A stretch of 64,000 nucleotides of DNA from Bugula neritina (lineage: Eukaryota > Animalia > Bryozoa): assembly GCA_964035545.1 (NCBI GenBank), contig OZ037770.1:3876662-3940661 (forward strand), read 5' to 3'. Positions 1,976 through 64,000 of the stretch are shown here, one piece after another. The position numbers and the translations under genes were made by a program. Within the stretch, counting starts at the first letter, position 1; each line of letters starts with the position of its first letter. Below the pieces are notes generated by a model. That model did not search any database, was not told where the DNA came from, and saw only the letters and a list, made by a program, of their open reading frames with translations.

Positions 1976-3873
1976 TTGACGAATTTAAATTTTTACATTA
2001 AGAAAATCAAAATGCTAAACACAAGGTAAAACGTAACGAAGACATAGCAGTGGCTTTATTGTTATATAGGTTTGTAGGTGTAAATTAATATATAAAAGAA
2101 ACCCTAATGCGATGTAAAAACATAATTTATAGCAGATGCATAAAGTTTTTGTTGGGTGACTATTCTCTATAGGTATTTGTATATTATTTACTATAGTGCT
2201 TGAAATATAAAAAGGCTACAGAGTTTCTAGGTTTTGTGGTTGCACAGTAAGAATTTTTTTGAGTGTCGGCAGGTTGATAAGAGTTCATTTCGCTTGTTTA
2301 AATTACACATGTTAGGTTTGTATAAAATAAAGAAACATTCCCATAGGCATAAATTACACCTTTTGGTAGTTGTGTTGTATGGTTTCGCTTTTTTTAATAT
2401 TTTCCAGCTTATGTTGTGCTTAATGTTTTTGTTAGTTAGTTGCCAAATGTGTTTGCTAAGTTCTGTTTGATTTGCTTTCTCCTTGTTTCTAAATGATGAT
2501 CTGTGGTTTGCGTATCTTAGTTTGAACGGTCCTTCACTTAGGCCAATGTATGTTGCAGGCTCATTTTCGGTAGTTTCCACAGTTGCTTGGTATATAACTC
2601 TGCTCTCCTGGCAGTTTCCTTTCAGCGGACAACTTTCTTTTTCTCTACAGTTGCAGTTTTTTCTGGGGGTTTTGTTTTGTTGCTTCTGTTTCTCTAATAG
2701 TCTGTTATTGTGGGCATTTATGGTCTGTTTTATGTTTGGCATGCAGCTGTAGCTAACCTTTATAGTGTTTTTGTTGATTATTTTAAAGAGTGGGTGGTGT
2801 TTTGGAAATTCTTCATTCATGATTTTAAAGAAGATTTTTGCAATTCTTGTGGTTACATGTTGGCCGTATGGTGGATTGTACCAAACAACTTTTCTTTTTC
2901 GGTTTCGAGATTTCTGTTGTGTGTTGTTTGTTTGGGTTCTTGGTAGAAATTGTAGTTGGTGTTTGTAGCCACTTTGGTTTAGGAGGTTTTGGTGGTTGTA
3001 GGTGGATTGTGTGAAAATTTTCTCGTTAGATGATATTGACGACAGTCGTTTATTAACGGACGAAGGTAGGTTGGAGATTATGCTTGCTGGGTGGTTAGAT
3101 TTGTTATGAATATATTTAGTAGAACTGTTTGGCTTAGTGTATGGTGTGTAGGTTTTATTGTCTAGGTTGAGTGTGGTGTCTAAGAAGTTAATATTTTTTT
3201 TATTTGCTTCGATTGTTATTTTTAATCCATTTTCAGAAAATATTTTGCAGATGTCCTTTTTTATGTTCTCTATTTCTCTGGGTGTTTTGTCAGAGACTCC
3301 TAAGCCGTCATCTCTGTACAGGTCAAAGTTTTTGCCATGTTTTAGTGTTATTGAGTTTAAAATGTAAGCAAATCAAACAGAACTTAGCAAACACATTTGG
3401 CAACTAACTAACAAAAACATTAAGAACAACATAAGCTGGAAAATATTAAGAAAAGCGAAACCATACAACACAACTACCAAAAGGTGTAATTTATGCCTAT
3501 GGGAATGTTTCTTTGTTTTATACAAACCTAACATGTGTACTTTAAACAAGCGAAATGAACTCTTATCAACCTGCCGACACTCAAAAAAATTCTTACTGTG
3601 CAACCACAAAACCTAGAAACTCTGTAGCCTTTTTATATTTCAAGTACTATAGTAAATAATATACAAATACCTATAGAGAATAGTCACCCAACAAAAACTT
3701 CATGCATCTGCTATAAATTATGTTTTTACATTACATTATGGTTTTTTTATATACCAGGTATTAATTTACACCTACAAACCTATATAACAATACAGCCACT
3801 GCTATGTCTTTGTTACGTTTTACCTTGTGTTTAGCATTTTGATTTTCTTAATGTAAAAATTTAAATTCGTCAA

Positions 3874-3924
3874 TATTGTGCCTGAGGAGTGCCGAAGAGG
3901 CATGAAACTATTAGTAGTACAATA
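3874..3924 (+). ncRNA. Minimal type I hammerhead ribozyme in PLE pLTR
   Basis: Stem I TATTGTGC/GTACAATA; core CTGAGGA; stem II GTGCC-gaaga-GGCAT; GAAA; short stem III (ACT-att-AGT); GUA cleavage triplet, predicted cut after 3916. Confidence 0.88.
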
Positions 3925-4104
3925 AAACAACATCTATATAATTAAATTGCTCTTTTCCTCAATAATATAATTGCTCATTATTATACACATAATAATTTGA
4001 GCACTTTTTTATCCGCTGTTTTTTAAAAATCTCACGATACAATTATTATAAAAGCTCCTTATATAAGAAAAATAAGTTGAGCACTCTCTCAAACAGCTGA
4101 CAAA

Positions 4105-6227
4105 ATGGAAGCAATCAATTTCGAATACTCAACAAAGAACATCCCTATACCATCAAACGAGGATTACATTAAGAGACTGATAGAAAAAACTCAACTCTTC
4201 TGCCGGCGATTAAGATGGAAAGTGTTTTTCTTCTTAAACCCACAGATAACTAGTGAACAGAAAGAAACATATGGATTTAACTCAACTAAACCAACACCTC
4301 AAATAAAAGAACTTGCTAATTTTGAGAAAAAATTAATCAACCTGATACGCAATGTGAAATTTAAACAGGATACAACTACTTTCCAAAGAAAACTTCGACA
4401 AGACATCAGAAACAAAATTAAAAACTCAACTACTCTTTTAGTACCATCCGATAAAACTAACAACTTCTACAAAATGGATACACACCTGTACAACAAAATG
4501 CTCCAAGACAGCATCACCAAGACGTACAAGAAGGTAAGCAAACACACAATAGACAAAATCAAAACTAAAACAAACCAAATTGTTAACAAACTAGACCTTA
4601 TAGACAGAGTCACTACAACTAGTGAGCAAGAAGCTTTCATCACACTGAAAGATCACAAGGACAATTTTACAAATAAACCAAGTTGCCGCCTCATAAACCC
4701 CTGCAAACCAGAGATAGGAAAGATTAGTAAGAAAATATTAGACCGAACAAATAACAAAATTCTCACAAACACACACCTAAACCAATGGAAAAATACCACT
4801 GATGTAATAAAATGGTTTGATGGAATTAACAACAAACATCTACAGACATTTATTTCATTTGACGTCATAGACTTTTACCCTTCAATTTCAAAAAACCTAC
4901 TTGAAAACGCTCTTACTTTTGCATCGGAATTTGATACAATCAGCGAAGATGAAAGAGAAATAATTATACATGCCAAAAATTCACTACTCTTCAACACTGG
5001 AAAGGCATGGGGAAAACATAACCACAACCTCTTCGACGTTACAATGGGAGGATACGACGGCGCAGAAACATGCGAACTAGTTGGGGCGTACATTTTAAAC
5101 TCAATAACACTAAAACATGGCAAAAACTTCGGCCTGTACAGAGATGACGGCTTAGGAGTCTCTGACAAAACACCCAGAGAAATAGAGAACATAAAAAAGG
5201 ACATCTGCAAAATATTTTCTGAAAATGGATTAAAAATAACAATCGAAGCAAGTAAAAAAATTATTAACTTCTTAGACACCACACTCAACCTAAACAATAA
5301 AACCTACACACCATACACTAAGCCAAACAGTTCTACTAAATATATTCATAACAAATCCAACCACCCAGCAAGCATAATCTCCAACCTACCTTCGTCCGTT
5401 AATAAACGACTGTCGTCAATATCATCTAACGAGAAAATTTTCACACAATCCACCTACAACCACCAAAACCTCCTAAACCAAAGTGGCTACAAACACCAAC
5501 TACAATTCCTACCAAGAACCCAAACAAACAACACACAACAGAAATCTCGAAACCGAAAAAGAAAAGTTGTTTGGTACAATCCACCATACAGCCAACATTT
5601 GACCACAAGAATTGCAAAAATCTTCTTTAAAATCATGAATGAAGAATTTCCAAAACAACACCCGCTCTATAAAATAATCAAAAAAACACTATAAAGGTTA
5701 GCTACAGCTGCATGCCAAACATAAAACAGACCATAAATGCCCACAATAACAGACTATTAGAGAAACAGAAGCAACAAAACAAAACCCCCAGAAAAAACTG
5801 CAACTGTAGAGAAAAAGAAAGTTGTCCGCTGAAAGGAAACTGCCAGGAGAGCAGAGTTATATACCAAGCAACTGTGGAAACTACCGAAAATGAGCCTGCA
5901 ACATACATTGGCCTAAGTGAAGGACCGTTCAAACTAAGATACGCAAACCACAGATCGTCATTTAAAAACAAGGAGAAAGCAAATCAAACAGAACTTAGCA
6001 AACACATTTGGCAACTAACTAACAAAAACATTAAGCACAACATAAGCTGGAAAATATTAAGAAAAGCGAAACCATACAACACAACTACCAAAAGGTGTAA
6101 TTTATGCCTATGGGAATGTTTCTTTATTTTATACAAACCTAACATGTGTACTTTGAACAAGCGAAATGAACTCTTATCAACCTGCCGACACTCAAAAAAA
6201 TTCTTACTGTGCAACCACAAAACCTAG
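4105..6227 (+). pseudogene. PLE reverse transcriptase + GIY-YIG endonuclease ORF with one 1-bp frameshift (~5680)
   Basis: RT motifs KDHK, CRLINP, SFDVIDFYPSI, MGGYDGAE, LYRDDG, FLD. C-terminal CNC..CPLKGNC, VIYQA..TYIG (GIY-YIG), CNLC..CRH. The inverted copy keeps the missing C (AATCAACAAAAAC) and reads through. Confidence 0.9.
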
Positions 6228-20219: not shown

Positions 20220-21303
20220 GGGCCGGTTCTAGTTCGCTTAACTAAAGCCGACGGAACTGCTTATGCTGACGCCGACTTAGTAACGCTGACGAATAACGGT
20301 ATGGCTTATTTGTTCAAAAGTATTAAGTATCAACTCGATGGAGAAGACTTGGAATATATAAACAATCCGAGACACGCTTCGACTATAATGGACTTGCCAA
20401 CTTATTCAGACGACTACGGTAAATCGAGAGGTCTCAATCAGTTATGGTCAAAAGACACTAGTAACGAAGCTGCCGCCAATAATTTAGGTTTCGCGGCTCA
20501 TCAAGTTTATTTAATACAAAAGCCCAATCCTAAAGGTACTTTTAGCGCTAAGGTAAATCTTAGACATTTGCTGGGTTTTGCCAACGATTACAAAAAAGTT
20601 TTGTACGATATAAAACATCAACTTACGCTAGTACGCGACACCGACGATAACGCCATTTATAGAGATAACGGCGTAGACGCTGGAAAAATAACGTTGGATA
20701 CCGCATATAACTCCTAGTTTTGAAATGAAAAATAAGCTTTATAAAATTATAGAGTCTAAAACTCAACTACCGATGGTATACAGGTCTAGATGGTGCGACA
20801 GGATTTCGGTGCCGCAAACTACAAACTTTACGTGGCGTTTGGGTTCTAGAGCCGATACGGAAAAAGCCCAGCATTATATCGTAGGCTTTCAAACGAATGA
20901 AAACGAAAGTCAAGCGACTAATCCTGCGCTATTCGATCGCGTTAACGTTAAAAGCATATACGCCATGTTAAACAGCGAGCGATATCCCGAAGTCGATTAC
21001 GATATAGATTTCGTTAAAATGAAGTTTAGTAGAGTGTACGGAGAAGCTTCGAGGTTTTGCGGTAAATATTACTGTATAAACGAGCTAATCGCTTATTCAA
21101 ACGTTTTACCTTCGAAATATAGAGATCTTTATGCTTTATTCGTACTAGACGTTAGTAAGCAAAGCGAAACTCTTAAAAATAGCGTGGCGGACATTCAACT
21201 AAAAATTCAGTTTAGTCAAAACGTACCCGCTAATACTCAAGCATACGCGCTAATTTTGTCCAATAAAACCGTGTCTCTTAGATCCGACGGACGTTTAGAA
21301 TAA
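20220..21303 (+). pseudogene. Polinton major capsid protein (double jelly-roll), N-truncated, frameshift ~20700
   Basis: TKADGTAYADADLVTLTNNGMAYLF, LRHLLGFANDYKKVLY, FTWRL, IVGFQT, LNSERYP, LFVLDVSKQSE motifs typical of Polinton MCP. Confidence 0.8.
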
Positions 21304-22394: not shown

Positions 22395-22951
22395 TGTAGT
22401 AGTTTTGTGGGTTATAGAATGAAATCAGACAGAGAACATAACTCCTTGTTATAGAAGAGACAAGAGAGAGAGGTTGCCGTGTGCTTGCAGTACTTTATTG
22501 TAGTAGAGAGAAGTATCCAGTGTGAGCTCCAGTCCGCAAGTGACTGAAGCTCTAAAATGTGTGTCCTTTTATACCAGTGGAACAAAGGACTTCTAGAACC
22601 TTCTACCGACAGCAGGGCTGATGTTCGGCAGAGGATACCGACATTCGTCATGTCGGTAACCGACACTGGAAATATCGGCAACCGACATTCGGTCTGCCTG
22701 CATCCACCTGCCGAAATCGGTCCAACTGTCGGTTTACATGAATCAGCAAAAATGAACGCAACCAAGTGTATGCGTATTGTAACTTATAATTGGGGAAAGG
22801 GGATTAAATGTTTACTATGCCAAAGGCTTAATAATAGCCATAGTATTTAAGGTATTAGAAAGTTACACCACAGACTTAGCTGTAACTACAGTATTTAGAA
22901 AAATAGCCATAAGTAATGTGTCAAGGGGGATAATTCCTAATATTTACCACA
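22395..22951 (-). repeat. 3' LTR
   Basis: Direct repeat of 29518-30074; PPT-like AGGGGG at ~22956-22961 on the minus strand. Confidence 0.95.
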
Positions 22952-23395
22952 CACACCCCCTATCAGAAAGTACACTTTTCTGATACAAAAACAGAGGGTA
23001 AATATAACAAAAGTAAAATAACGGGTCAAAGGGTAAATATAACAAAGGTAAATAACGGGTCAAAGGGTAAACATAACAAAAAGTAAAATAACGGGCCAAA
23101 GGGTAAACATAACAAAGGTAGAATAACGGCCGAGGGGCATAGGGACTAGCATAGGAATACAGGGGTAGGGCTACTGGGAGTGCAGAAAAATAAAAAAAAC
23201 TTGGTTGAGGTTCAGGTTCTAGAGAAAAAAATGGTATAATACTGATAAAAAAATGGGGTAAGGAGAATAAAATAACTTGGACTGGAAGGAATTTATGAGT
23301 ACACACAAAAATATAATAACATGAAAAAAAACTTAGATACTGCAACACACACTATTATTTACACACATATTTGTGATAACACAATTAAACACACT

Positions 23396-23436
<41 letters not shown>

Positions 23437-23669
23437 AAAGAAGTAGTATGAGAGTCTTATATGTAATTAAGTTGCCTGCGTAGGGCCTGAATGTCCTCCT
23501 AGGTCTCCGGATCTCTCCTTTGCGGGGACTGGTATGTGCAGGCTGGCGACAAGGGGGGGGGGCAGGATGATGAGTAGAGACGTCGTGGTGGAGAGTCGGG
23601 AAAGTGAACATCTAGAGGGAGGCTAGGTGGTACGTGGACTGGTGAGTTGTGGGCTGCGGCTGGTTCTTT

Positions 23670-26600
23670 CTACTGTTGTCTATCCTGGCCAGCACGACCC
23701 GTCAGTACGTTCGGTAGCGCCAGTGTTCTCCGTCTTGGCCCGTCGGTGTCCATCCAGACAGCCCCACTGCCCAGGGTCATTTGCGTCTCTTCTGCAGGGA
23801 GTTGAGCTTCTACAGGTAAGGGAAGGTCTTCCAGAGCAATGGGGGCAGACTGGGCCGGGGAGGGGGACCCCGTCGGGCTGACTGGAGCCGAGCCGGGGTT
23901 CCAGATAGAGTGAAAGTCGGGTGGAGTCGCATCGTCTACTCCAGTACCTATGTGGTCAGCTGATGACTCCGGCAGCGGGAGAACCATATCATAAGGATCC
24001 GAGTTAAGATTTGTACGTGTCGGCGATACTGAGACTGGAGTTGAAATGACCGAACCTCGTGTCACATGTTCGGTCATATTCCACGGCGCATTTCGGTGGG
24101 GCAACTCCACGCTCTCAGTATCTGCCGATCTTCGGTACGTGATCTCAATAGTAGTATCTCTGGCAAGGTATCTAGGCCCGTAGGAATGTGGGTTACTGCC
24201 TGTACTAGGCGAATTCTGCCCTTGTGGGGGTAAATCCACGGGTCCTACGTGATAATCGGCTAGATACCCAAGAGGTCTTCTGCTTCTGGCCTGTCTGTCC
24301 AGCTCTACAGGTGCCTCAGGCTGTGGTGGAGGTGCGGTAGGGGCAGGGATCCCTGGGTCACCTCCCTCAGCCTGAGGTGCTCTTTCTGGCACCGGGGCCG
24401 GCTCTGGGGCCGGTGCAACTGGTGGACCAGGTAGAGGAGGGGGTTCTGGTGTCTGGTCCGGTTCCACTGGGTCCTGGACTGCGATCTCCCACTCTCTGGG
24501 CCGAGCCACCCGTCCTCGGGAGATGGGCTGGCGAGCCGGCTCGAGTAGGGGGAGAGCCTGCCCCGCAGCGTCGGGGCTGCCCTCATAGGGTTTTAACCGA
24601 TGCTCGTTTTGGACTGAGACCTGCCCTGAGCGTTCCACACGGTATGTGTGGTTCGGTAAAACCTCTATGACGCAGTATGGCCCCACGAACTTGGGCTGAA
24701 GTTTAGCCGACTATCCGCGCCTCCTGCGGTAGCTCACCATCCATACACAGTCTCCTACTTGGTATAGTGGTGGCTCCTCGGAGTCTTCTGTCCTCGTCTG
24801 CCACTGCTGCTCGCGCAGTGCTTCATGAGCCTGCTCCATCGTCTCGATGAGCTTCCCCACGTACTCATGTACGGGGGCCTCGGGTGCAGGAACATGGTAG
24901 GTTAGGTGCTCCGGGACACGAGTCTCTCGGCCGAGCATCAGGAAGTTTGGGGTTTCCAGGGTGCTGGAGTGTGGTGTACTGCGGTAGGCCCGCATGATTT
25001 GGGGTAGTACCACGTCCCATTCTTCCTGGCCTCGGCTCAAGAGCAGGCTTCGGAGGGCATCTCCTAACATCCGGTTGTTCCTCTCTACGACTCCATTCCC
25101 TTGCGGGTGATATGGGGTCGTCCGGCTTTGATTCACCCCCCATATCTGGCAGAGGTCTCCCATCAGCTGGGACTGGAACTGGGCCCCCTGGTCAGTGTGA
25201 ATCTGCTTGGGAAGCCCGAAATAACAGAATACTTGCTGATCCAGGGTTCGGGCCACGGTGGGAGCTGACGCATCTGGTATAGCCAGCGCATCAGCCCACC
25301 GAGTGAAGTGGTCCGACAGCACCAGTATCCAGGTGTTCCCTCTGGCGGATAGCGGCATAGGTCCGACTAGATCCACGGCCACCACCTGCCACGGCCGACC
25401 AGCGTATAGCCGGCGTCGGCCCGTGGTCTCGGTAGGGCGGCCATGTTTGCTAGCCTGGCAGACCTCGCATTGTCGTATCCGCAGCCGTACGTCCCGAGTC
25501 AGTCCGGGCCAGTACCAGCGCAGTCTCAGACATCTGATGACTGGCCCCTGAGTGGGCCTGCTTGTGGGTGTCCCAGATTATTTCTCGCCGGAGGGCACGT
25601 GGACATACGACGCGGTCCCTCTCACGGCGGTTGTCTGCTGCGAGTGTATTGGTGAGGAGGCCGTCCTGGTTGACCTTGAGGGAATCCCAGCAGCTACAGA
25701 GGTGTCGGTACTCGACGTCCCCTTGTTGCTGCTGTTCCTCGGTAGGTCGGCGGCCCTCCTTCTTGGCCCGGAAGATGTCAGCTACTGCCCCTGGCAGTGT
25801 CTGCTGAAGCCGGCTCAACTCCTTAACGTTTTGATACAGCGTGGGGTTGGCCCGTAAGGCATTGACGGTGTCTGGTGGGTGTTCGGACCAAAGCTGGCCG
25901 CGTTCCCAACTATAGACGTTGTCGTCCCCCAGCTGTCTCTCCACGTCAAGGCGGGCAGGTCCTCCATCTCGCTCCTCAATGTGCAGACACTGCTTGCAGG
26001 CCTCCTCTGGCCGTCTGCTCATCCCATCGGCATTCCCGTGCTTCTTCCCAGCACGGTGCTCGATCCTGTAGGAGAATTCCGCAAGAATCTCCAGCCATCG
26101 GGCCACCTGGCTCGAGGGCTCTGCACGCTTACACAGCCATATTAGAGACGCATGGTCGGTTCACAACCTGAACGCTCTTCCATACAAATATAGCCAGAAG
26201 TGCTTCACCGCCTTAACTACTGCCAGGAGCTCCTTCCTGGTGGTGCAGTAGTTCTTCTCGGCGGGGGAGAGGGTCTTGCTGTAGTAGGCGACGACCACCT
26301 CAGTCCCACCCTGGACCTGTGACAGAACAGCTCCCACGTTGTGGTCGCTGGCGTCGGTGTCCAGGATGTATTCTGTGGCTGGGTCAGGGTACGCCAAGAT
26401 AGGCGCCTCTGTTAGCCGACTTTTGAGGTGGTCAAATGCCTGTTGCTCCTCCTGCGTCCACTGCCACCGGACCCCTTTCGCCGTTAGCCGATTCAGTGGC
26501 TGTGCAACTCCTGCAAACCCGGGGATGTACTGCCGATAGTACCCCACCAGGCCCAGGAATGCGCGTAGCTCTGTGAGGTCTCGAGGGACAGTCCACTCTT

Positions 26601-28597
26601 CCACAGCCCGTACCTTCTCCGGGTCGGTAGCGACGCCATTACGGCCAACCACATGGCCCAGGTACTTCACCTCCGGCTGCAAGAGCGTGCACTTGGAGGG
26701 CTTTAGCTTCAATCCGGCGGCCCGAAGACGGTCAAAGACCTCTCGCAGACGACTGACATGAGTCGCAAAGTCTGGGGAGATTACTATGACGTCGTCCAGG
26801 TAGATGAGCAAGGTCTTCCAGTGCAGTCCACTGAGGACCTGCTCCATGAGTCGCTGGAAGGTTGCCGGGGCGGACGTTAGTCCAAATGGCAGAACCTTCC
26901 ATTTCCAGAGTCCGTCGCGGGTGATGAACGCTGCTTTGTCCTGTGCATCAGGACTGAGGGGTACCTGCCAGTACCCGCTCAGCAGGTCCAAAGTACTAAA
27001 GTACTTGCTCCCCACGAGGGCATCCAGAGACTCGTCTATCCTGGGGAGAGGGTAAGCATCCTGGATGGTGACACTGTTGAGTCTGCGGTAGTCCACGCAA
27101 AACCTTCAGGTACCATCCTTCTTCTTGACCAAGACCACGGGAGAGCTCCACGCACCGTGGGCAGGCTCAATCAGGTCCCGGTCAAGAAGGTCTTGCACTT
27201 GTCTGCTTACTTCCTTCTCCTTCTCCGGACCTAGCCGTCGTGTAGGCTGCCTGATGGGGGTGGTCCCGGCTGCCAAGGGTATCTCATGACACACCACCTT
27301 GGTCAGCCCCATGTCTTCATCTCCGCGGCTGAAGACATCACTGTAGTCTATCAGTAGTCGAGCCAGTGCTTGGCGATCGGCACTACTACTACAGTTCCCA
27401 CGGGCCCCATCGTACAAGCCAGCCACGTGCTCTGGTATCGCTGTCCGTCCGGCCCGAGGGGAAGCACCTGGGGCGTCGGCCACTGTTTCCAGTGCCGGCC
27501 CCACATCCGATTTCTGGATGGAGTGATACTTCCCCACCAGGGCGCCTGTCGATAGTTGGATCGGCTCTGTGAAAGGGTTAATGCACTGTACCAGGAGTTC
27601 TCCCTGGCAGTCTAGCCGATTTAGGCTGTTTGCCAATTGGATCCCTCCCGGCAACCCTTCCACCAGTCCCAGCCCAGCTATCCTCTTGCAGTTGACTCTG
27701 CAGCGAAGGGTAGCCTGGGACCGTCCAGGTACCGTGCAGCTGTGTACTACCTGGACGCCGCCCACTAGGGGACGGCCGAACTTGTCGACGCAGACAAGTT
27801 CTTTGCCAGCCATCATTAACGCAGAATTCTGGAAGTCTATGCGACACTGGTGTTTCTCCAGAAACGGCATGCCCAGAATTGCGTCCTCCTTCAGATGGCT
27901 GACAATGAAGGTCTCGTGGATCGCCTGATCACGGACCCGCCCAGGTAGTGTGAGGATGCCGTAAAAAGGAATGCACGATCCGTCCGCCAACGTACCATGC
28001 GCTCCCTCATACGGCTCGAGACTGGCTCTCGCGTGGGCCCCGAGGGTGTCAAAGAGGCGCCGACTCAGCAGGTTGGTAGTACAACCGGTGTCCAGCAGGA
28101 AGGTGGCTGCCTTTCCCGCAATCTTCCCGGGTAGGAAGTAGCTGCTGCCGTAGGGCTGGACACTTTTAGGCTGATCGGCCTCAGTGGGTGACACCTCCTG
28201 GGTGACCACGTGGGGTCGTCTCCTGGTCTGTGCGACCATGGGGGTTTTCAGAGGTCTAGAAGGTAGCTAGGGAAACTCTCGCGAGTAAGCTGAATCTTCT
28301 TCTATGACCTCGTGGGCTAACCCCGCGAACCGGTTGTGGAGTGGCCAGGCGGGAGGTTCGGGAAAACCTTGCGGTCTCCGAGTTCTCCGGGGTGCCTGCC
28401 ACCCTGTCAGTTGACTCCCGCGGGGGACACCCCGGCACGACTGGAGGTTTAGGTGGGCCTCTGGGCCCCCTCCTCCGAGGACCTGGCCGTTCCGTGTTGG
28501 CCGTCATTCCTCTATGTGCGTTTGGCGTACCCTTGGTTGGGAGGCTGGACCTGGGCTCACGGTTGGCGGAGTCTACCGTGAGCCTTGGTTGTTTAAA
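23670..28597 (-). pseudogene. pol: Gypsy pol (protease, RT, RNase H, integrase, long Pro-rich tail) with stops and frameshifts
   Basis: FLLDTGC; YLDD; DTDAS..ELLA; VDLVGP..TDQG..GVVER; GPY. In-frame stops at 27106, 26161 and 24711; frame breaks ~28250 and ~25540. Confidence 0.93.
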
Positions 28598-29454
28598 GGC
28601 TGTTTCCCCTTGCGGGGGCATTGCCGCTAGACGTGACCAATGGCGCCACACCCCCAGCAGGTGAGTTGGTTCGGCCGATTTGGTCTAGTCCGAATATCGG
28701 TCCTCTGGCTGCCGGCTTGCTGCTGTTGCAGTCTCACTACTTCCGATTGCAGGCCTTTCACCATGTTTATCAACATGGTGATCTGCGAGGAAGGTGGTGC
28801 AGGGTCAGCAACGGCAGCTACTGTAGTTTCTTCCTTGGCCGCCTCTACCACTTGACTTGCTGTGAAGTCGGCTCTGTGGGGGTTGTCTACCTGATAGTAG
28901 GACCGGCCCATCTCTAGAGCTTCTTCGATCGTGGTGATCTTGGCGGCCAAGTAGTGCTTCTGAAGGGCACTGTCGTTGACAGTGCTGAAGAAGGCCTCGT
29001 AGACGAGCTCTCGCCGCTCCTCTAGAGCGGTTCGGCTGAATGCTATCAATGCCAGTCTTTCAATGGCGTTAGCATGGTCCTGAAGCGAGGTCCTTCGGTC
29101 TCTCCTCATGTTTTGAAGTTTGGTGCGGGCATCTCTAGCAGTCAGACCGAATCGGGCCCGGAGTGCCTGGTAGGTCTGCCCGACATCCTCTCCAATGGCG
29201 TAGCTTTTAGCTGGTCCAGTCAAACTTGACCGCAGCTGCAGAAGACGTACCGGTGCCGGCCATTGGGCGATGGTAGCAACATCTTCGAATTCCCTGATAA
29301 ACTGCTCTACGTCGCAGTCACCTCCGAAAATCGGCGGCCGTAGGCGGTACCTGTCACCAGGTGGGGCCTGATTAGCCGTGCTGACTGCTCGGAGGGCAGT
29401 TACGAGGCTCTCCAGGGTGAGAGCCTCCCCCCCATCCTCGGGGGCCCTTGCCAT
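28573..29454 (-). pseudogene. gag: Gypsy gag with CCHC knuckle interrupted by TAG
   Basis: CWGCGAIGHV*RQCP; the natural stop follows KQPLNNQGSR. Confidence 0.85.
28591..28597 (-). promoter_or_regulatory. -1 ribosomal frameshift heptamer T TTA AAC (gag to pol)
   Basis: X XXY YYZ in the gag frame just before the gag stop; the -1 frame is the open FKQPRLTVD.. ORF. Confidence 0.7.
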
Positions 29455-29498
29455 CTGGCTAGCTCCTTGTCTCTTCCAAGGGCTGCCTGACTATTCTG

Positions 29499-29516
29499 AT
29501 CCCACCGCTGCCACCA
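29499..29516 (-). promoter_or_regulatory. Primer-binding site complementary to tRNA-Leu 3' end
   Basis: TGGTGGCAGCGGTGGGAT, 1 nt from the LTR. Confidence 0.85.
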
Positions 29517-29517
29517 A

Positions 29518-30074
29518 TGTAGTAGTTTTGTGGGTTATAGAATGAAATCAGGCAGAGAACATAACTCCTTGTTATAGAAGAGACAAGAGAGAGAGGTTGC
29601 CGTGTGCTTGCAGTATTTTATTGTAGTAGAGAGAAGTATCCAGTGTGAGCTCCAGTCCGCAAGTGACTGAAGCTCTAAAATGTGTGTCCTTTTATACCAG
29701 TGGAACAAAGGACTTCTAGAACCTTCTACCGACAGCAGGGCCGATGTTCGGCAGAGGATACCGACATTCGTCATGTCGGTAACCGACACTGGAAATATCG
29801 GCAACCGACATTCGGTCTGCCTGCATCCACCTGCCGAAATCGGTCCAACTGTCGGTTTACATGAATCAGCAAAAATGAACGCAACCAAGTGTATGCGTAT
29901 TGTAACTTATAATTGGGGAAAGGGGATTAAATGTTTACTATGCCAAAGGCTTAATAATAGCCATAGTATTTAAGGTATTAGAAAGTTACACCACAGACTT
30001 AGCTGTAACTACAGTATTTAGAAAAATAGCCATAAGTAATGTGTCAAGGGGGATAATTCCTAATATTTACCACA
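29518..30074 (-). repeat. 5' LTR
   Basis: Direct repeat of 22395-22951. Confidence 0.95.
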
Positions 30075-30247: not shown

Positions 30248-32596
30248 ATGGAGCCTAACAAGAATGCTATGACGGTCAAAAGCCTAAGGGTTTTGGCTAA
30301 ACAAAGAGGATTAAAACAATATTCTCGATTAAAAAAATCGAACTTATACGGCTACTAACGCCCGTAAATATTATGGACAAACCCGTTCCGAATATAGGGC
30401 AATCTCTCTTAAAACCCCAACCATGAAAACGTATAATAACTAAAATACGTAATCTAGGAAAATGGATTAAACACAAATTAGAAGATTGGGTTACACCACC
30501 TTAATCGTAAACTCGTTTATAAAAAAAATTAAAGCGTTGTATAATCAACCTAAGCCCGTAATAAAAAATCAAGCGACTAAAGGCTGGTTTCAAACTTATG
30601 AAATTAAGGGTTTATCGAAATACGATATAAACTCATTTAGTAAAGTAGTAAGATCGGGGGTATTAGAATTATTAAAACCTCCCATAAAAGTTAAAATATT
30701 TATATATTGTGAAATGGGAAAAACTAATATAAATACTGGTGAAACTATTTTAGAAACTATGCCATTTACATCAAACGTTGAAACTATATTAGAGTATACA
30801 AATGTCGATGAATTATACGGTGTAATGATTGAGCGTATAAAAGAAAATTTAGCTTCGCTAAACGCGAAAAGAAGTAATTGGATATTTAAATCAATTGTAA
30901 AAATAGAAACTAATATTAATAAATATCAACCTTTCAATTGGGTCATCGTGGATTGATCTTCCAGAAAAAATAAAAAATAAAAAAACTGTAATAAACCCAA
31001 AAAATAAAAATAACGAGTGCTTTAAGTTGGCTATTTTAGCGTCACTTTTTCTCAAAACGTTTGGCGAGAGTTTAATATGAAAACGTTTAGAGACTATCAC
31101 GACTTGTATATGAAAGTTGATGTATTACAGTTGGTCGACGTACTCGAAAACTTTAGAGACGTATGTCTTAAACATTATAAATTAGATCTGGCTTGGTATT
31201 ATACGCTCGCAGCTTATCGTGAGACGCTATGCTTAAAACTACGGAATTAGAATTAGATCCTATTACCGACGTTGATCAATTACTTTTTCTTGAAAGAAGA
31301 AAGAGAGGCGGAGTAAGCATGATTAGTCATAAGCACGCTCAAGCTAATAATGAATATATGGAAAACTATGACTCTAATAAGCCTAATAGTTAAATTACGT
31401 ACTTGGACGCTAACAATTTATACGGATGGGTTATGTCTAAAAATTTACCAATTGGTAATTTTAAGTGGATAACTGAAAAACGGTGTCGAGACTTGGAAAA
31501 AGGTGAGCCTTTACCGCCCAGTTTCTTAGAAGTAGAATTTCGAATATCCTCGCAAATTACACGACTCGCATAAAGATTATCCCTTTCGCCCGAAAAGATT
31601 AACGATCAGTAAAGTAGAAAAATTAACTCCAAATTCAAAAAATAAGAAAAATTACGTTATACATTACGAAGCGCTAGAGCAATGTCTTAAATACGGTTTA
31701 AAGCTTACGAAAATTCATAGAGGTATAACCTTTAATGAATCCGATAAGGATAAAAATTATATAGACTTGAATGCTAGGCTAAGAACTTTAGCTAAAAGCG
31801 ATTTTGAAAAAGATCTTTTTAAGCTCATGAATAATTCGGTATTTGGTAAAACGATGGAAAATAATCGTAACCGAGTCGGTATTAAACTCAATAGCGATGA
31901 AAAAATAGCTAAAGAGTCAACGACTAAACCTAATTTCAAAAGGTTTACTATATTTTCTGAAAATCTCGTAGCCGTTCATATGAACGTAGTAAAACTAAAG
32001 TTTGACAAACCCGTATATTTAGGGGCGGCAATCTTGGATATTTGCAAAACGAAAATGTATGACTTTCATTACGGTTATATTAAACCAAAGTATAACGCGA
32101 GCGCGCAATTATTATTAACAAATACGGATAGCCTAATGTATCACGTGCGAACAAAAGATTTTTACAAGGATATATCACCAGACATTGCTACCACGTTTGA
32201 TACGAGTAATTATCCTAAAAATCACGAATCGGGTATACCGACCGGTAAAAACAAGAAAGTAACAGGTATGTTTAAAGACGAAGCCGGTGGTAAGCAAATT
32301 ACCAAGTTTGTGGGTCTAAGAGCCAAGTTATATTCGTATAAAATGGATGACTCAGCGGAAGAGAAAAAATGTAAAGGAATTAATAAATCTACACGCGACA
32401 ATCGCATAATGTTTGACGATTATAAAGAATGTCTATTAACGCGACGAAATCAGCATAGAACGATGAACGTATTGAGAAGTCATAAGCATACGATGTACGC
32501 CGAAACGATAAACAAAGTAGCCTTGTCGGCCGAAGACGATAAATGAATTATACTAGAAGACAGAATAAGTACTACTCTTTATGGCTATAATAAATG
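30248..32596 (+). pseudogene. Polinton protein-primed family B DNA polymerase, fragmented
   Basis: RGGVS, YLDANNLYGWVMS, KLMNNSVFGKTMEN, TNTDSL (DTDS with D>N), GLRAKLYS, KCKGI. Most of the exonuclease region appears deleted near 31050. Confidence 0.92.
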
Positions 32597-32960
32597 ACGA
32601 ATAAAGAATAAGAATATTGATATCGATAGGGCGATTAAAAGGTTAAAAATTCCTAATTTTAGAAGAGTATTTTCGAGAGATGATTCACTCGATAAGCCAC
32701 GTAAAAAAAAATGCGGTGTATTAAATTTAGATGATTTAATGGAAGGTGGTACTCATTGGGTCGCTTGGTATAACAATAAAAAAAAAAATATTATTTCGAT
32801 AGTTTTGGACTTCATCCTCCTCTAAAAATAATGACATATTTTATAATACGGAACGAGTGCAAGAATTTGGTATGGTTATATGCGTACACTTGTCTTTATA
32901 TTTGCTTAAAGAAATGTCTAAAAATGAGTCGCCTCAATTGATTATAAATAGTTTACTATA
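32594..32960 (+). pseudogene. Adenain-like cysteine protease (Polinton PRO)
   Basis: CGVLNLDD..GGTHWVAWY..YFDSFGL.PP..VQ..ICVHL across frameshifts. Confidence 0.8.
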
Positions 32961-32964
32961 ATAA

Positions 32965-33810
32965 ATGAGTTCTGTATACATATTCGGCGGTTCCGCCGAA
33001 TCTACTATTATTACAAATAACTCGTATATTACGAGTACTATAAAAGATAAAGACTTTGAATATAAAGGAGATAAATTTGTAGCTCGTATGATTTTAAATT
33101 ATATAGTTGATAAACAAATTGAATTAACTTACTGTTAATATATTTTAATGATGAATACGAATATAGTGATAGAGAAATATATTGGACTGATAAACAACTT
33201 AGAGTATTAGTTTGGGATAATACAAAACCGCCTATACACAATAATGCAAACTTTGTTGATTACGATATTAGCGGTAATATACATAACGTTCCTTACATTA
33301 AAATTGCAATTAATAAAACTATTGAAGGTAATAAAAACTTTCAAATAATGTTAATATGTTCTAAAAAATTTCCTACTCATAAACCAGACGACATAATTTT
33401 TACGGATGTTGTACATTCAGATCTTATGCCTCAACAAAACTTTTTACCTTTTCGTAACGCTTCAATGAAATTATATTATAACTACATATAAATGAGTCCG
33501 GGCTAATACAATTTCACGAGCGTCCTAGTAATAATCCTTTATATTGGAAAGATAAAAAATTAACGCTAATAATTGGAGATACGACAAAACCTCTCGAGCA
33601 CGTTATTAAAGAATATTTTATTCGAGGTGACGAGCATAATGTTTCGTATATTAAAATTCCTCTATTAGAAATTATTAACGCGGGTAAAAATATCGGGTTA
33701 ATATTAGAGTGTTCAAATAATTTTACGAGTCGTAAACCCGATGATGTAACGGTTGATAATGACGCGCCTATATCTATACCATTCGAGTTAGTGTCATTAA
33801 AATTATATTA
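32965..33810 (+). pseudogene. Two paralogous decayed Polinton ORFs
   Basis: Both contain YWxDKxL..DxTKP..HNVxYIKI; TAAATG starts at 32965 and 33492. Confidence 0.5.
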
Positions 33811-33813
33811 TAA

Positions 33814-34716
33814 ATGAGTCTTGTGTATATATTTGGAGGAACGTCAAACGACGTAATTAATAAAATAAATGACGATTTCGTTTTAAGAGACGGTAGTAAT
33901 ACGCTTACGGGTACTTTAGATATGGGCGTTAATAAAATATCTAGAGTCGTTGATCCCGTTGACGATCAAGACGCGGCTACAAAAAAATACGTTGATGACG
34001 CGAGTATACCAAAAATACGAAACCCTAATTAAAAATTAGTCGTATCAAATGAAGAAGGTAATGTTGTAAATAGCAGCTTAAGCGTTAACGATGTCGTTAA
34101 GAAATCGTCTAGTTACGCTATGCCTAAAATACCAAACCCTATTAACCAATTAACTATATCAACTGACGCCGGTCACGTTATCGATAGCAATTTAAAAGTT
34201 GATGATGTTATTACGAAAACTAATGTATCTAATTACGCTATGCCTCTTATACAAAATCCAACAAATAAATTAACCGCGTCAACTGATATCGGTAGCGTTG
34301 TTGATAGTAGTATAGGTATTAGCGAAGTCATTACAAAAACGAATATAGATAAACACGCTATACCCCTTATAAACAATCCTAATAATAAATTAACCGTATC
34401 GACTAATACCGGCAGCGTTGAAGATAATTATTTAAGCGTTAGCGACGTTATTACGAATACTAATGTGTTTAATTTCGCTATACCATTAATACAACCGTCA
34501 ATTGGAGGTAAATTACTAATGCTTTCGAGCGATGGTAATGTCGTAGAAACAGGTATAAATATTGTTGATCCTATTACGATAAATAATATATTGGGTTACG
34601 CTATTCCAAAATTACAAGCACCGGTTGGAGGTAAATTAGTAACATCAGCTAGCGATGGTAATATAATAGAATCTACCGAATCTCCTTCGCAACCTGTATT
34701 TTCGAGTTACGTTTAA
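33814..34716 (+). pseudogene. Fibre-like repeat protein
   Basis: LDMGVNKISRVVDPVDDQDAATKKYVD motif, then ~6 repeats of ~38 aa (AxPxIxNPxNKLTxSTxxGxVxD); one internal stop at 34032. Confidence 0.65.
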
Positions 34717-58558: not shown

Positions 58559-61500
58559 TTAGGAGTTTTCTTCTCTACTAAGCCCATCGAAGCCAGGAAA
58601 CAGGTAAAGTCTTTTACGGAAAGGAAGAGTCTTCCAGATTACAATCAAATTCCTGCTTCTCTCTGAATCTTCATCTGGACACAGTTTCCTAACTAGTTTA
58701 GTCTGTACCTGTAGAGTAAGTAATGACTAGTAAGATTGTTTATCAATTCACTATTATAGCTGTGATAAAATGTAAATTTCAGCTTTTAGAATATTGTTTC
58801 CTACTTTTAACAAATATGAACAGCAAACACTTTGGGAATTGTCTACCGGAGTCATATCAGATGGCATATAGCAGTACAGTGGCACTAGTTATTAGCAAAC
58901 TACAAGAACATATTGACAAGGAAGAGAAACTATAATCAATATAGTGAGCCAATATATGCTAAAGGAATTGTAAGAGCAAAAACTACCAGTTAAACTGGAG
59001 AAAACTAGGAAGGACCTTCTGTTACTAAAACTAAAGTAGACATCTTCTTTTAAAAGACAAAAGGGTTCAAACATAGAAATGAATAAAATGATATGATGAG
59101 AAATAATATTTTAATTTCTTAAATAAAAGTTAAACTAGCCAAAAAAGTATTGTGATTTTTAAACTTTTAAAGTTGAAATAGTTTGTGATTTATAAACCCA
59201 CCTGCTGAAAGATGGTGTAGAGATCCCGGTGACAGGCATGTTTGTAGATTGAAGATACTAAAGCTCTAATCATAGGAGATCCATACTCAGCATGTCTCTT
59301 TGATGCTAAAATACAATTAAGTGCAACCAAAATTTAGGTTTATAGCCAGACCAAGTTTAACAGGTTTTAGTTATGGCATAGGCCTATCATATTTAAAATC
59401 TCAAAGTTCTGGAACACATTTTACTTTTTTCAGTTTAGAAGTTATTAGAATCAAAGCGCTTACAAAATGCGGGAATAATACAAAATTGGTAAACCACATC
59501 TTATATAAGGTACAACAGCTCAGACAAACTTATAGCCAATCACTGTCTCTTATTGTACTTACAACAGATGTTACTCTTTAGAACAAGAAGATTATCAACA
59601 TCCAGTCTGGTCCATCGCTCTTCTATTCTAGGTGCTGGTGGTAAGACAGGTCTGATGGGTCTTATTACACTGGGTGTTTCAGGATATACAATATCATCAT
59701 CAGGTTCAGAATGTGTAGAAGAGACAGCTTCAGTTTCTTCTTCTTGAGGTGCTGCAAGACCAGATCTGTCTGGATTTACCTCAATGTTTGCTGCAACACA
59801 AATAATTTAGTTATCAGGGAAGTAAGATAGATCAAAACATCCATTTTTGTAACAAAGTTGCCTAACCAATTCTATATGACACATTTCTGAAGATATTCCA
59901 TTTTTTTTGTAAAAAATCATCTTAATGAAACAAAGAAGTTTTGACTACTGTGTAACCACTCAAATAAGTGTGTCCGTTTTTATTACAAAACAATATTCAC
60001 CTTCGCTGGAAGCTTCTAGGATGACAACTGTAGGCTTAGGCTTTAAACTCAAAGGAGCGAGCAAATCATAAAAGTCTGTAAGGTTGACCTTCTCAAGGTC
60101 AGTTCCATAGATGCAGTTATCTTCACTACCATGAGTCATAATAACCAGTATTTGACAACCCAAGCCATTGTTTTTTTCTCCTCTTATCTCAGACTTCACA
60201 GCAGACATCATTTCCTACAAATTTGGAAATAACTATAATAATATTATATAATTGATACAAGGTTATGATAACTGAATAAAGGAATAATTTTCCAACTTGC
60301 AAAAACAAAATTTTGACCAGCAATAAACATGATTTGGGTTTTTTATTTAGGCCTTATTTTGAAACATTGATAAACTAAATAGTCAGGTGATTGTGTCAAT
60401 TTTTAAGGTTTGACGAAACAAGCGTCAGGTTTCATATAGATAAACTGATTGAATACTATTGCTATCAGTCTAACAATATTATACCTCTGCTTTTAGGTCT
60501 GTGTGTGTCTCAACATCAAACTTGAGAGATTTCAACATGAGCGACATATTCTCAACATCAGCATCTGAACCTTCCCTGCACAAGTCTGGTCTTTCAACAA
60601 AGTTCTTGTTGTTTATTATCAGAGCTTTCCCTCTCTCTCTGGTCATACTGAACACCTGGATACAATTTTCAGACAATCGCATACAGTTGTGACAAACAAG
60701 TATGTATATTGACAGTATATTTTGAAGCACTCCAAGAAAAATAATTACAATTATTCTAGAGCTCAAGATGCCATTTGGAGCTTCAAAGTTGGAAGTCTCA
60801 TAGAAAGCAGTATAGTGCACTCTCTTGCAAAATCAATTTTTTATTTTTATGCTAGGTTTTAAGTTCATTACTTTTTAGCTAAGTTGAATAAAAAAAATTT
60901 GTTTAAAAGATCTATTGCCAGCTTTACCAACAAAACATTTAAATAGTCAATTAAGTGTTAATTGGTATTCTGGCACGAGTCATTCAGGATATGATGTAAT
61001 GAGGTTACAAAATACAAGTTATTACACTGCATGACTATACTTTATTGAAAATTTCTTTTATTTAACGTTAAGTTTTTACAAAACAAGCATGTATTTGCAA
61101 GGCTGTAAAACTAAATAAGGACCATTTATGGCAACAATAAAATTTGTTTGCATATAACACTTTACTGGCCTTAAAATAGACCATGGTCTAATTTATGTAA
61201 ACATAATTTTCTAAACCAAACTATCTGCAAAACATTCACTTAGCTTACAGATGCAAATGATTGCAATAGAACATTATGGTAAATTCAACTTTAAGCTTGA
61301 AGGTCGGAAAAGAAATCATACTATAAAATGTTTGCCCAACTAGGATTACTCTATATGATCATAGGAGTTACTACTGGAAAATCCCAACCCTTCATCCCAA
61401 GCAATTCCTCTGATTTCTATTTATTATTCCTTCAGCCTTCAGGTTCTCTTAGCCTCTGACCTTTCTAGGAGTACTTCTACTGCTACTACTACTCTTCACT

Positions 61501-64000
61501 AAAGGTCAAAAAAGCCCAGAAAAAATTGCCCTGCACCTCCACTGGAATTCAAATGGCAGAAGTCTAACTTTCAAGCATGCAAGGCAGGATAAACATTACA
61601 CCACAAGCACTAATAAGTGATCTCCACACAACAGATGCCTCCTAACCATGACAACCAATTAAACCCTAAACTAATAAAAGCAGAAAAGAAACTATTATGG
61701 TTGGACCAAAAAGTATAAGTATAGTAAAATGATGGAATTTGAAAATTTGCATGCATTCAGATCAATTGATTTTTAAATCTAATTGAACTGCACGTGACAA
61801 TCTAGTAAAAGGAGTTTTAGAAACTAAAATACTTTACTGAGTGGAGAAAGGAGAGCTGCTACAACTTGTGTTCATCAACTTATACATTCACCTTGTCAGT
61901 GTTTGAGATGAGTTGTTTTATCTTTGGGTTGGTTGTTGTCTTTAGTTGAATTTTTATTAACTTCATGCCTTCTTCAGGTTGAAAATTTTCATCATCTTCA
62001 GAGAGATCACTCAGATCATCATCATTTAACCCACCTACAGTCACATGATTAGACAGATTATTTTCAAAATTTGAAACCATAAACTACATATCTTGCTTAG
62101 ACAGGAGAAGAAGCAATTAATTTCAAAAATCACAATTAGATATGATTTGTAGGGAAATGTAGGGCAAAATTTGCAAAGCCTATAATTTTAACAATACTGC
62201 TGGTATAAAAAGTAAGTCCTGTCTAAAAAGTTTACCATTTGAATTGTTCTGCTCTCTTCGAATTTTGAGCTCAGAAAGAAACTTTTTCAATTGATTTGTT
62301 TCTGCTTCAGATAAAGTCTCACCTGATCAAAACAGACATAATTAGTAACATTAAGACTAGATGGGAGGCATTAGAAGAATATGAGACACAATCGAAAGCT
62401 CATGTATCAAGTTTACACTTTACAAGTAGGCGTAGAAGTTCATTAACGCAGCTGGGTAGTTTGCTAATGTTCATCTGTTATTGAAATTCATTATTGCTTG
62501 GAAAAATAGTAGATATGCTTTGATAGTGTAACAAAATATTTAAAAACTTTTGGGCAAAGCAATCAAAAGTGAATCATAGTTGTAAACATACATGGATGAA
62601 TTAGAGCACTGGGTATCTCTTCATCGATACACAATATCTTTGAAGATCCATGACACTTCTTGACATTTGGTAGCAGTTGGTTTTTTAGAGAACGGAGACA
62701 CCATTTAGGATGCAAAAGCCTTTTAGGGCAAGAAACCCCCAGTAGCATGCAGTGAGCACAGAGGCAGGCAGTAACTGGTCGACTAGCAGTCCAAGTTTCC
62801 ATCACATGTCGAAGAATGTTGTTTGTGGCTGAGATGAGTTTCTCCCACATCCTTGAAATGTGAGGAGCATCGGATGACACATAGAGTAAGACTCTTCTAG
62901 AATCATAATCATGTGTCAGCTGTGTGTATGTCTCATCTTGATAGACAGTAGCTCCATTTCTCTTCACCCTCATTGTAGCAAACTCTTTAGAAAACAATTC
63001 TAGCAAACCAACTGTCATTTGGTGGTAGACATGCTGCGGTAAAGCTAGGCCCTTAAACTTTATCTCAGTGTGAAAGACCATATCCTTTGGTGAAGTGTAT
63101 GACACACCGTGATGTTCCTTAGCAAACTGAGGGATGATGAAGTACGGTTCACGGACATCATTTTCCAGGGGGCCATATAACAAACGAAATGTTCTAAGCA
63201 AGCAAACAGCAGTTTCAACATCATGGGAGCTTTTGAATAATGTTTCCTTTGCGATCAAATTTGTTAGAAGAGATTTCATCATCAAGCCTGTTGTTTTGAA
63301 GCAATTCACAGACTCTTCAAACTCTTCTGCTTCAATTCTCAACCCTTCTTCGGAAATGCATGATTGGAATTGATCAACTCTTTTCTGCCAGATCTCTGGG
63401 TCATGATGATACAAGACACATAGTAGTTTGGTGACTTCTGTGATCTTGTGAAATATGTATGGTTTAAGTGCATCAATATTTTTATACCAGAGAACTTTAC
63501 CGCAGTCGTGCATGTATGTGAGAATGGTATCTCGCTGATGTGGTTCAACCTCAAAGCCTTCTTTTGTCAATTCTGACAGAATAAATGAAAAAGAGCTGAA
63601 AGCTCCGCTTAAAGACAAAACCTTCTCATTCACTTCTTCCCAGATCAGTGGCAAAAGCTTAACAAAGGGCTGACTACTTAGAAGAAGCGAGCTCTTTATC
63701 ATTTCAAACTCAACATACTTGTCATCCTTTCCAATCCCATAAACATCTTCACTGGCAAAAACCTTTCCATTTGATGAATTGAAATGCTGTATTTTCGCAA
63801 AATCTCCATCTGAACTTTTCTCTTCATCAAGAACGTTTTTGCACAGCTGTTCAGACACGCTAAGAAAGTTTTCTTTAAGCTGTTGGAACTGCTGACTCTG
63901 AAACTTATCCTTGTGTGTGAAGACAAGCTTAGGTGGGCCAAGAGATGGATGGGCGAGATAGAGGTGAGACATGAAGTCAAAGGCCAACTTTCTGACAGCC
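58559..64000 (-). CDS. Roc-COR-caspase-like fusion gene, 3' part; exons >64000-62592, 62322-62236, 62034-61892, 60655-60485, 60214-60001, 59790-59563, 59305-59202, 58708-58559
   Basis: Roc G4-like LVFTHKDK; COR-like ILTYMHDCGKVLWY..YIF..YFIIP..LP..VYHQM. Caspase p20 RGKALIINN..REGSDAD..IMTHG..IYGTD..KPK..LEASSE; p10 SKR..GSPMIRAL..DL..TL..KRLYLFPG. All seven introns are GT-AG, and exon lengths 87/143/171/214/228/104/150 keep the frame. Confidence 0.88.
61320..61612 (-). mobile_element. Probable tRNA-derived SINE in an intron
   Basis: Minus-strand head TGTGGTGTAATG (A-box-like) ... TTTGAATTCC (B-box-like) at tRNA-like spacing; degenerate. Confidence 0.45.

Follow-up and report, generated by a model that had tools for sequence, protein, structure and literature searches.

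Genes that join a Roc GTPase domain to a COR domain, to leucine-rich repeats (LRRs) or to a caspase have been described before in several settings. In bacteria, LRR-AP-GTPase-COR-effector systems with a caspase among their effectors have been predicted to act against invaders (Kaur et al. 2021, PMC8195603), and in brown algae Zambounis et al. (PMC3341825) describe ROCO candidate receptors that evolve by birth and death, carry their LRRs on repeated exons and show diversifying selection on the LRRs. Among animals, Horkan et al. 2024 (PMC11463336) described a ROC-prodomain caspase of Owenia fusiformis, presented there as an isolated peculiarity of that species. Here we describe a locus of the bryozoan Bugula neritina. 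The window, by which we mean the whole 64,000-nucleotide stretch that was analysed (C6:3876662-3940661, contig OZ037770.1, in a genome of 216 Mb), ends within a minus-strand gene in which Roc and COR are spliced to a caspase fold. From sequence and modelled structure we conclude, with moderate confidence, that this gene is a disabled member of a bryozoan family of single-chain, NLR-like receptors that would comprise both active and decoy members. A first, sequence-only reading of the window had noticed the fusion and knew of no characterised animal ROCO-caspase; we likewise found none characterised, but the Owenia protein had already been reported (PMC11463336). A search from which most subscription journals were absent returned no literature on a bryozoan ROCO-caspase expansion or its function.

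Results

A Roc-COR-caspase gene with an LRR sensor part

Eight minus-strand exons carry the gene through the window. All seven introns have AG/GT sites, and the spliced product comprises 834 open codons and a stop, while the remaining two frames of the same product contain 86 and 55 stops; the frame-preserving junctions and the acidic linker between Roc-COR and caspase that had been read from the sequence were borne out. Each exon was searched on its own against Pfam and structures, and only local scripts used the joined protein. Extension past the window end adds what the sequence-only reading could not see there, namely an upstream N-terminal exon, six LRR exons and the Roc P-loop. The complete architecture consists of an N-domain, ~15 LRRs, Roc, COR, a linker and the caspase, encoded by 15 exons in all. 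The parts are listed from the 5' end of the gene, with the evidence for the window exons in brackets.

C6:3948045-3947819, minus strand, outside the window: first coding exon, inferred, 75 codons
C6:3947114-3942559, minus strand, outside the window: six 138-nt exons with two LRRs each
C6:3941263-3940662, minus strand, outside the window: 5' part of the large exon, with three LRRs, a cap and Roc G1-G3
64000-62592, minus strand: 3' part of the large exon, with the end of Roc, COR-A and COR-B; the gene runs past the window end (splice model, Pfam, AlphaFold)
63907-63918, minus strand: Roc G4 motif THKD (sequence; invariant in 16 of 16 scored paralogues)
62322-62236, minus strand: exon 2, helical linker of 29 codons (kept in paralogues; helical at the corresponding place of the Watersipora model)
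62034-61892, minus strand: exon 3, acidic linker reaching the start of the caspase domain (splice model, paralogues, alignment)
60655-60485, minus strand: exon 4, opening part of caspase p20, including the S1-pocket Arg motif REGSDAD (Peptidase_C14, E 2.7e-10)
60214-60001, minus strand: exon 5, catalytic exon of p20 with His present and Ser at the Cys position, EASSE (Peptidase_C14, E 7.6e-4)
59790-59563, minus strand: exon 6, intersubunit linker rich in acidic residues and proline, followed by the first p10 strand (the matching linker of the Watersipora model is disordered)
59305-59202, minus strand: exon 7, part of p10 that carries the second S1-pocket Arg (Peptidase_C14 positions 173-205, E 0.12; alignment)
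58708-58559, minus strand: exon 8, last part of p10 up to the stop codon (splice model, alignment)

The large exon was assigned by profile and by fold. With the P-loop included, which lies just past the window end, Roc (PF08477) scores 34.4 bits against a cut-off of 27, and the motifs G1 to G4, the first three of them outside the window, are all present and conserved in paralogues. The COR-A and COR-B matches of this exon are weak and fall below the cut-off (E 0.001-0.07); COR-A is matched in 50 of 69 family members. The AlphaFold model of the exon reaches a predicted local distance difference test score of 90.6, and its best structural matches are LRRK1, the C. tepidum Roco, LRRK2 and the isolated COR domain 3DPT (E 9e-11). 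The earlier designation of the exon as Roc-COR holds by the Roc score and by the fold, except that COR stays below the cut-off at the level of sequence. We assign the large exon, by profile and model, to Roc plus COR, so that the gene is a ROCO gene by both domains. The N-terminal 75-residue domain of the family (L032:4822-5046, minus strand) has no Pfam match, and its look-alikes in the Atlas are all unnamed. Several LRR exons of the focal gene lie within duplicated intron-plus-exon units.

At the C-terminal end, exons 4, 5 and 7 match Peptidase_C14 in profile order, and p20 and p10 are both present as judged from this order and from alignment to the models P0105 of Watersipora and P0148 of Bugula (KAF6029336). 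The caspase fold was modelled on a Watersipora relative, which folds as a caspase. Intron positions were compared with the same two models: all seven window introns lie within 1-2 residues of introns in the Bugula model, which has one additional intron in the linker, and six of the seven match positions in the alignment to the Watersipora RefSeq model, the seventh bounding a 29-codon exon here as against one of 27 in P0105, where the linker aligns poorly. The genome matches a B. neritina locus at 94% over 1.9 kb, the closest named relatives of the gene are from Watersipora and Bugula, and bacterial contamination was ruled out by the spliced exons, the 16-Mb contig and these bryozoan relatives. 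Because introns are conserved in independent models, and because Roc-COR exons elsewhere in the genome are likewise followed by caspase exons, the genomic comparison supports a single gene and a real fusion. A search of Logan with the Bugula model P0148 as query found no transcripts spliced from COR to caspase, and a metagenome scan with exon 5 as query gave no match.

Expansion of the family and variation of its LRR face

The genome holds at least 91 Roc-COR exons, a lower bound beyond which one further locus on C3 falls outside the count; 30 of them lie in the C6 array that includes the focal gene and 32 in one array on C1. Caspase exons follow downstream on the same strand, with no intervening COR, for 91 of 91 COR exons, within 8 kb in 88 cases. 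Variation among the copies is focused on exposed β-strand positions of the LRRs, which form the concave face. By a simple pairwise method, the ratio of nonsynonymous to synonymous change (dN/dS) on this face is 3.7 in ten cassette exons, compared with 0.55 at other LRR sites. For the large exon, measured across 16 paralogues, the face gives 1.2 and the other LRR sites 0.22. The corresponding values for Roc and COR are 0.18-0.32; the G motifs are almost invariant, with G2, G3 and G4 invariant in the 16 paralogues. The focal locus is thus part of an expanded, clustered family with a diversifying LRR binding face, and in our view the LRR sensor part and the expansion are more informative than the fusion at a single locus. 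An exon-by-exon search of 49 candidates gave one partial NACHT match in the whole genome. Several paralogues on C6 are broken: in L006 (C6:3523992) Roc is interrupted by unrelated sequence, and in L008 (C6:3755216) and L025 (C6:4987651) a stop codon interrupts the COR exon.

Repeated loss of the catalytic cysteine

Active-site motifs were read by three pattern searches, which gave 56 sites, a few of them perhaps stand-alone caspases. The motif is EAC at 18 sites, QAC at 16, HAC at 13, EAS with the codon AGC at six, EAS with TCC at two and EAA at one. The catalytic Cys is accordingly kept at 47 of 56 sites and absent from nine, with Ser in eight and Ala in one; because the pattern accepted just a few residues at the Cys codon, it would have missed any other replacement. 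HAC stands in place of QAC mainly at C1 34.2-35.1 Mb, with a few sites elsewhere, and may reflect an altered substrate preference. All eight Ser copies, six of them open throughout the Roc-COR exon, lie within the C6 array. Since TCC and AGC are different single-base changes from TGC, the Cys was lost at least twice.

The gene adjacent to the focal copy (C6:3986827-3976738, comprising L035 and L036) is one of these Cys-less genes. It is intact, with 13 exons, 1,296 amino acids, the motif EASSG and four LRR cassette exons, one of which encodes exactly the same protein sequence as a cassette in the focal gene; this identity suggests exon exchange or recent duplication. In the three pairs measured, the dN/dS of the caspase exons is 0.33-0.40.

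Two lesions of the focal copy

The sequence-only reading had described full p20 and p10 subdomains. Both are there in profile order and the catalytic His is kept (MTHG, 60133-60131), but the catalytic Cys position is occupied by Ser (codon TCC, 60010-60008), in the motif EASSE that replaces QACxG (QACSG in relatives). Both S1 Arg motifs are present, and the pocket Gln is replaced by Glu. Because its catalytic Cys is Ser, the focal copy is, as predicted from the sequence, a pseudocaspase and not an active caspase.

The second lesion is a 5-nt insertion in the large exon, ~480 nt past the window end, which brings a stop at C6:3941136, before Roc. It is not present in any of the 28 other paralogues that align there. 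As a result, the focal gene is open for only 394 amino acids, that is, for the N-domain and LRRs, and no single frame in the assembly leads from the start codon to the caspase. The insertion lies outside any homopolymer run and for this reason is probably real. An active protease in the focal copy is ruled out by the missing catalytic Cys together with the frameshift, and the copy most likely represents a gene that was disabled recently, within an array that evolves by birth and death.

Other elements in the window and neighbourhood

Between the focal gene and its neighbour lies an intronless frame of 331 amino acids (C6:3973595-3972603, minus strand) that by eye resembles a seven-helix receptor. 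The remainder of the window includes mobile elements. A G+C-rich, Ty3/Gypsy-like retrotransposon occupies 22400-29900 on the minus strand, with its pol split over several frames and near-identical end repeats at about 22412-22765 and 29535-29888. At 20301-21303 and 30486-34716 lie pieces of a gene for a double jelly roll capsid protein, recognised by Pfam, and, by eye, of a B-family DNA polymerase; they are probably what is left of a broken-up Polinton-like element. At 2227-6227, two inverted GIY-YIG endonuclease-like frames stand beside a reverse-transcriptase-like frame; the group looks Penelope-like by eye and has no Pfam match.

Related genes in other animals

About ten Watersipora RefSeq models carry both Roc and caspase. 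Most of them retain His and QACSG, and a structure model of one shows a caspase fold. Roc-COR-caspase gene models were also found in amphioxus (XP_002614028, with LRRs), Lingula (XP_013407220) and Owenia (CAH1786849, P0233, with a Bcl-2 domain and no LRR), the last of which is probably the protein reported by Horkan et al. (PMC11463336). In Branchiostoma belcheri, the gene model KAI8482183 (P0241) reads COR-B, caspase and GT4. A quick unrooted tree unites the caspase domains of bryozoans, with the focal sequence on a long branch, in one group with a support of 100. The amphioxus and Lingula-Owenia sequences fall outside this group, which suggests that such fusions arose separately in bryozoans and in the other animals.

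Discussion

How would a chain of this kind signal? We hypothesize that the receptors detect a foreign or non-self ligand through their variable LRR face, that ligand on the LRRs would shift the nucleotide and oligomer cycle of Roc-COR, that this shift would bring the tethered caspase domains together, and that their proximity would lead to cell death or immune signalling without adaptors. The Cys-less minority, to which the focal copy and its intact neighbour belong, keeps the fold, and its members could act towards Cys-bearing paralogues as decoys, as partners in the manner of cFLIP or as units that only sense. The proposal in the sequence-only reading that the GTPase switch directly controls caspase dimerisation is plausible for the family; such control cannot give protease activity in the focal copy itself, because that copy has no catalytic Cys and is frameshifted. 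Such control could run in either direction, because the Roco protein of C. tepidum is dimeric in the presence of GDP and monomeric in the presence of GTP (PMC5714945). The linker between COR and caspase is long and of low confidence in the Watersipora model.

A more far-reaching version, which we regard as speculative and rather unlikely as a whole, is that ~100 adaptor-free LRR-Roc-COR-caspase receptors have largely replaced NLRs in bryozoans, with the ROCO GTPase cycle switching the tethered caspase and with repeatedly evolved Cys-less members acting as sensor-only or cFLIP-like partners that pair with active members via COR.

Several points count against the receptor family as we propose it. 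The dN/dS values are pairwise Nei-Gojobori counts over non-independent pairs with no formal test, and the hypervariable sites were already visible when the site class was defined. An exon-by-exon search on 49 candidates does not prove that NACHT is absent. The dN/dS of the caspase exons mostly reflects history that preceded the loss of Cys. The caspase domain of the focal subfamily is fast-evolving (branch 1.5) and, because of this and because many copies read EAC or HAC, those Cys-bearing copies may not be normal Asp-specific proteases.

Which other explanations would account for the same observations? The one that survives best, and that we consider a genuine though minority possibility, accepts the receptor family and takes its Cys-less copies for decaying duplicates, such that Cys loss is early pseudogenisation with no decoy function. 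The focal copy is indeed also frameshifted, another Ser copy (C6:3755216) has a stop in its COR exon, and broken copies are frequent in the array. However, the Roc-COR exon is open in six of the eight Ser copies and the neighbour is open across all 13 exons, and two single-base changes have both led to Ser although just two of the nine possible from TGC do so, an argument that is weakened by the few residues that the pattern allowed at the Cys codon.

It is improbable, in our estimation, that the focal copy is unbroken in the animal, either because the 5-nt insertion is an assembly error or confined to one allele, or because translation restarts at the next Met to give a nearly LRR-less Roc-COR-pseudocaspase that could be a dominant inhibitor. 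As this explanation would have it, the insertion is the only break in the eight window exons and those upstream, all of which have canonical splice sites, and an in-frame ATG directly follows it. Yet the insertion is not in a homopolymer run, no phase-compatible alternative acceptor was seen nearby by eye, and a stop followed by seven introns is a usual target of nonsense-mediated decay.

To a similar degree we doubt that the caspase domain is, throughout the family, a non-proteolytic scaffold or a protease of altered specificity whose dimerisation is not gated by Roc-COR, with a role perhaps in colony allorecognition or polypide regression and not in pathogen defence. EAC or HAC replaces QAC at 31 of the 47 Cys-bearing sites, the COR-caspase linker argues against rigid coupling, and GTP monomerises the bacterial Roco (PMC5714945). 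Set against these points, most Watersipora and Bugula models keep His and Cys, the two that were aligned keep both S1 Arg motifs, and the example of initiator caspases indicates that induced proximity needs no rigid linker. As for the role, the data fit allorecognition and pathogen sensing alike. Lastly, a wrong joining of two adjacent genes, one ROCO and one caspase, is rejected as highly improbable, for although some Watersipora models stop after COR or begin at the caspase, the introns coincide with those of P0105 and P0148, every COR exon counted has its own same-strand caspase exons downstream, and the Watersipora models noted above hold both domains.

If the family works as we propose, with Cys-bearing receptors and Cys-less partners, it would represent an animal intracellular receptor with a GTPase switch instead of a STAND ATPase, and sensor, switch and protease would lie within one chain. 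Caspase activity would then report dimerisation and could offer a read-out for a question of the LRRK2 field, namely which form is the active one, the Roc-COR dimer or the monomer with bound GTP, and the natural Cys-less members would be a built-in test of paralogue pairing. The focal copy itself is of interest chiefly because it documents turnover and the recurrent loss of the catalytic Cys.

The closest comparisons differ in which part of the chain they share. The Owenia, Lingula and amphioxus genes resemble the bryozoan family as animal genes in which Roc-COR is joined to a caspase, and the amphioxus gene also has LRRs. The bacterial systems of Kaur et al. share a fast-evolving LRR, Roc, COR, a C-terminal effector and several paralogues per genome; in them, however, the effector is variable and the assignment is a computational prediction, whereas the bryozoan caspase is of the metazoan p20/p10 type and its genes are spliced. 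The brown algal ROCO genes have one LRR per exon where the bryozoan genes have two, and the abstract of Zambounis et al. describes no caspase effector. With MFHAS1/MASL1-type proteins the bryozoan gene has the order LRR-Roc-COR in common, and RefSeq calls the Watersipora relatives 'MFHAS1 homolog'. In contrast to MFHAS1, LRRK1, LRRK2 and DAPK1, the bryozoan C-terminus is a caspase and not a kinase, a death domain or nothing, and the family has at least 91 copies, exon-duplicated and diversifying LRRs, and a COR that falls below the Pfam cut-off. cFLIP has a caspase fold without the catalytic Cys and stands alongside active relatives; the bryozoan Cys-less copies share this Cys-less fold and differ from cFLIP in having no DED domains. 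Finally, the logic of sensor, switch and effector is like that of NLRs, but the bryozoan effector is C-terminal, and membership of the NLR family is ruled out because the switch is a Roc GTPase of the ROCO type and not a NACHT or NB-ARC STAND ATPase.

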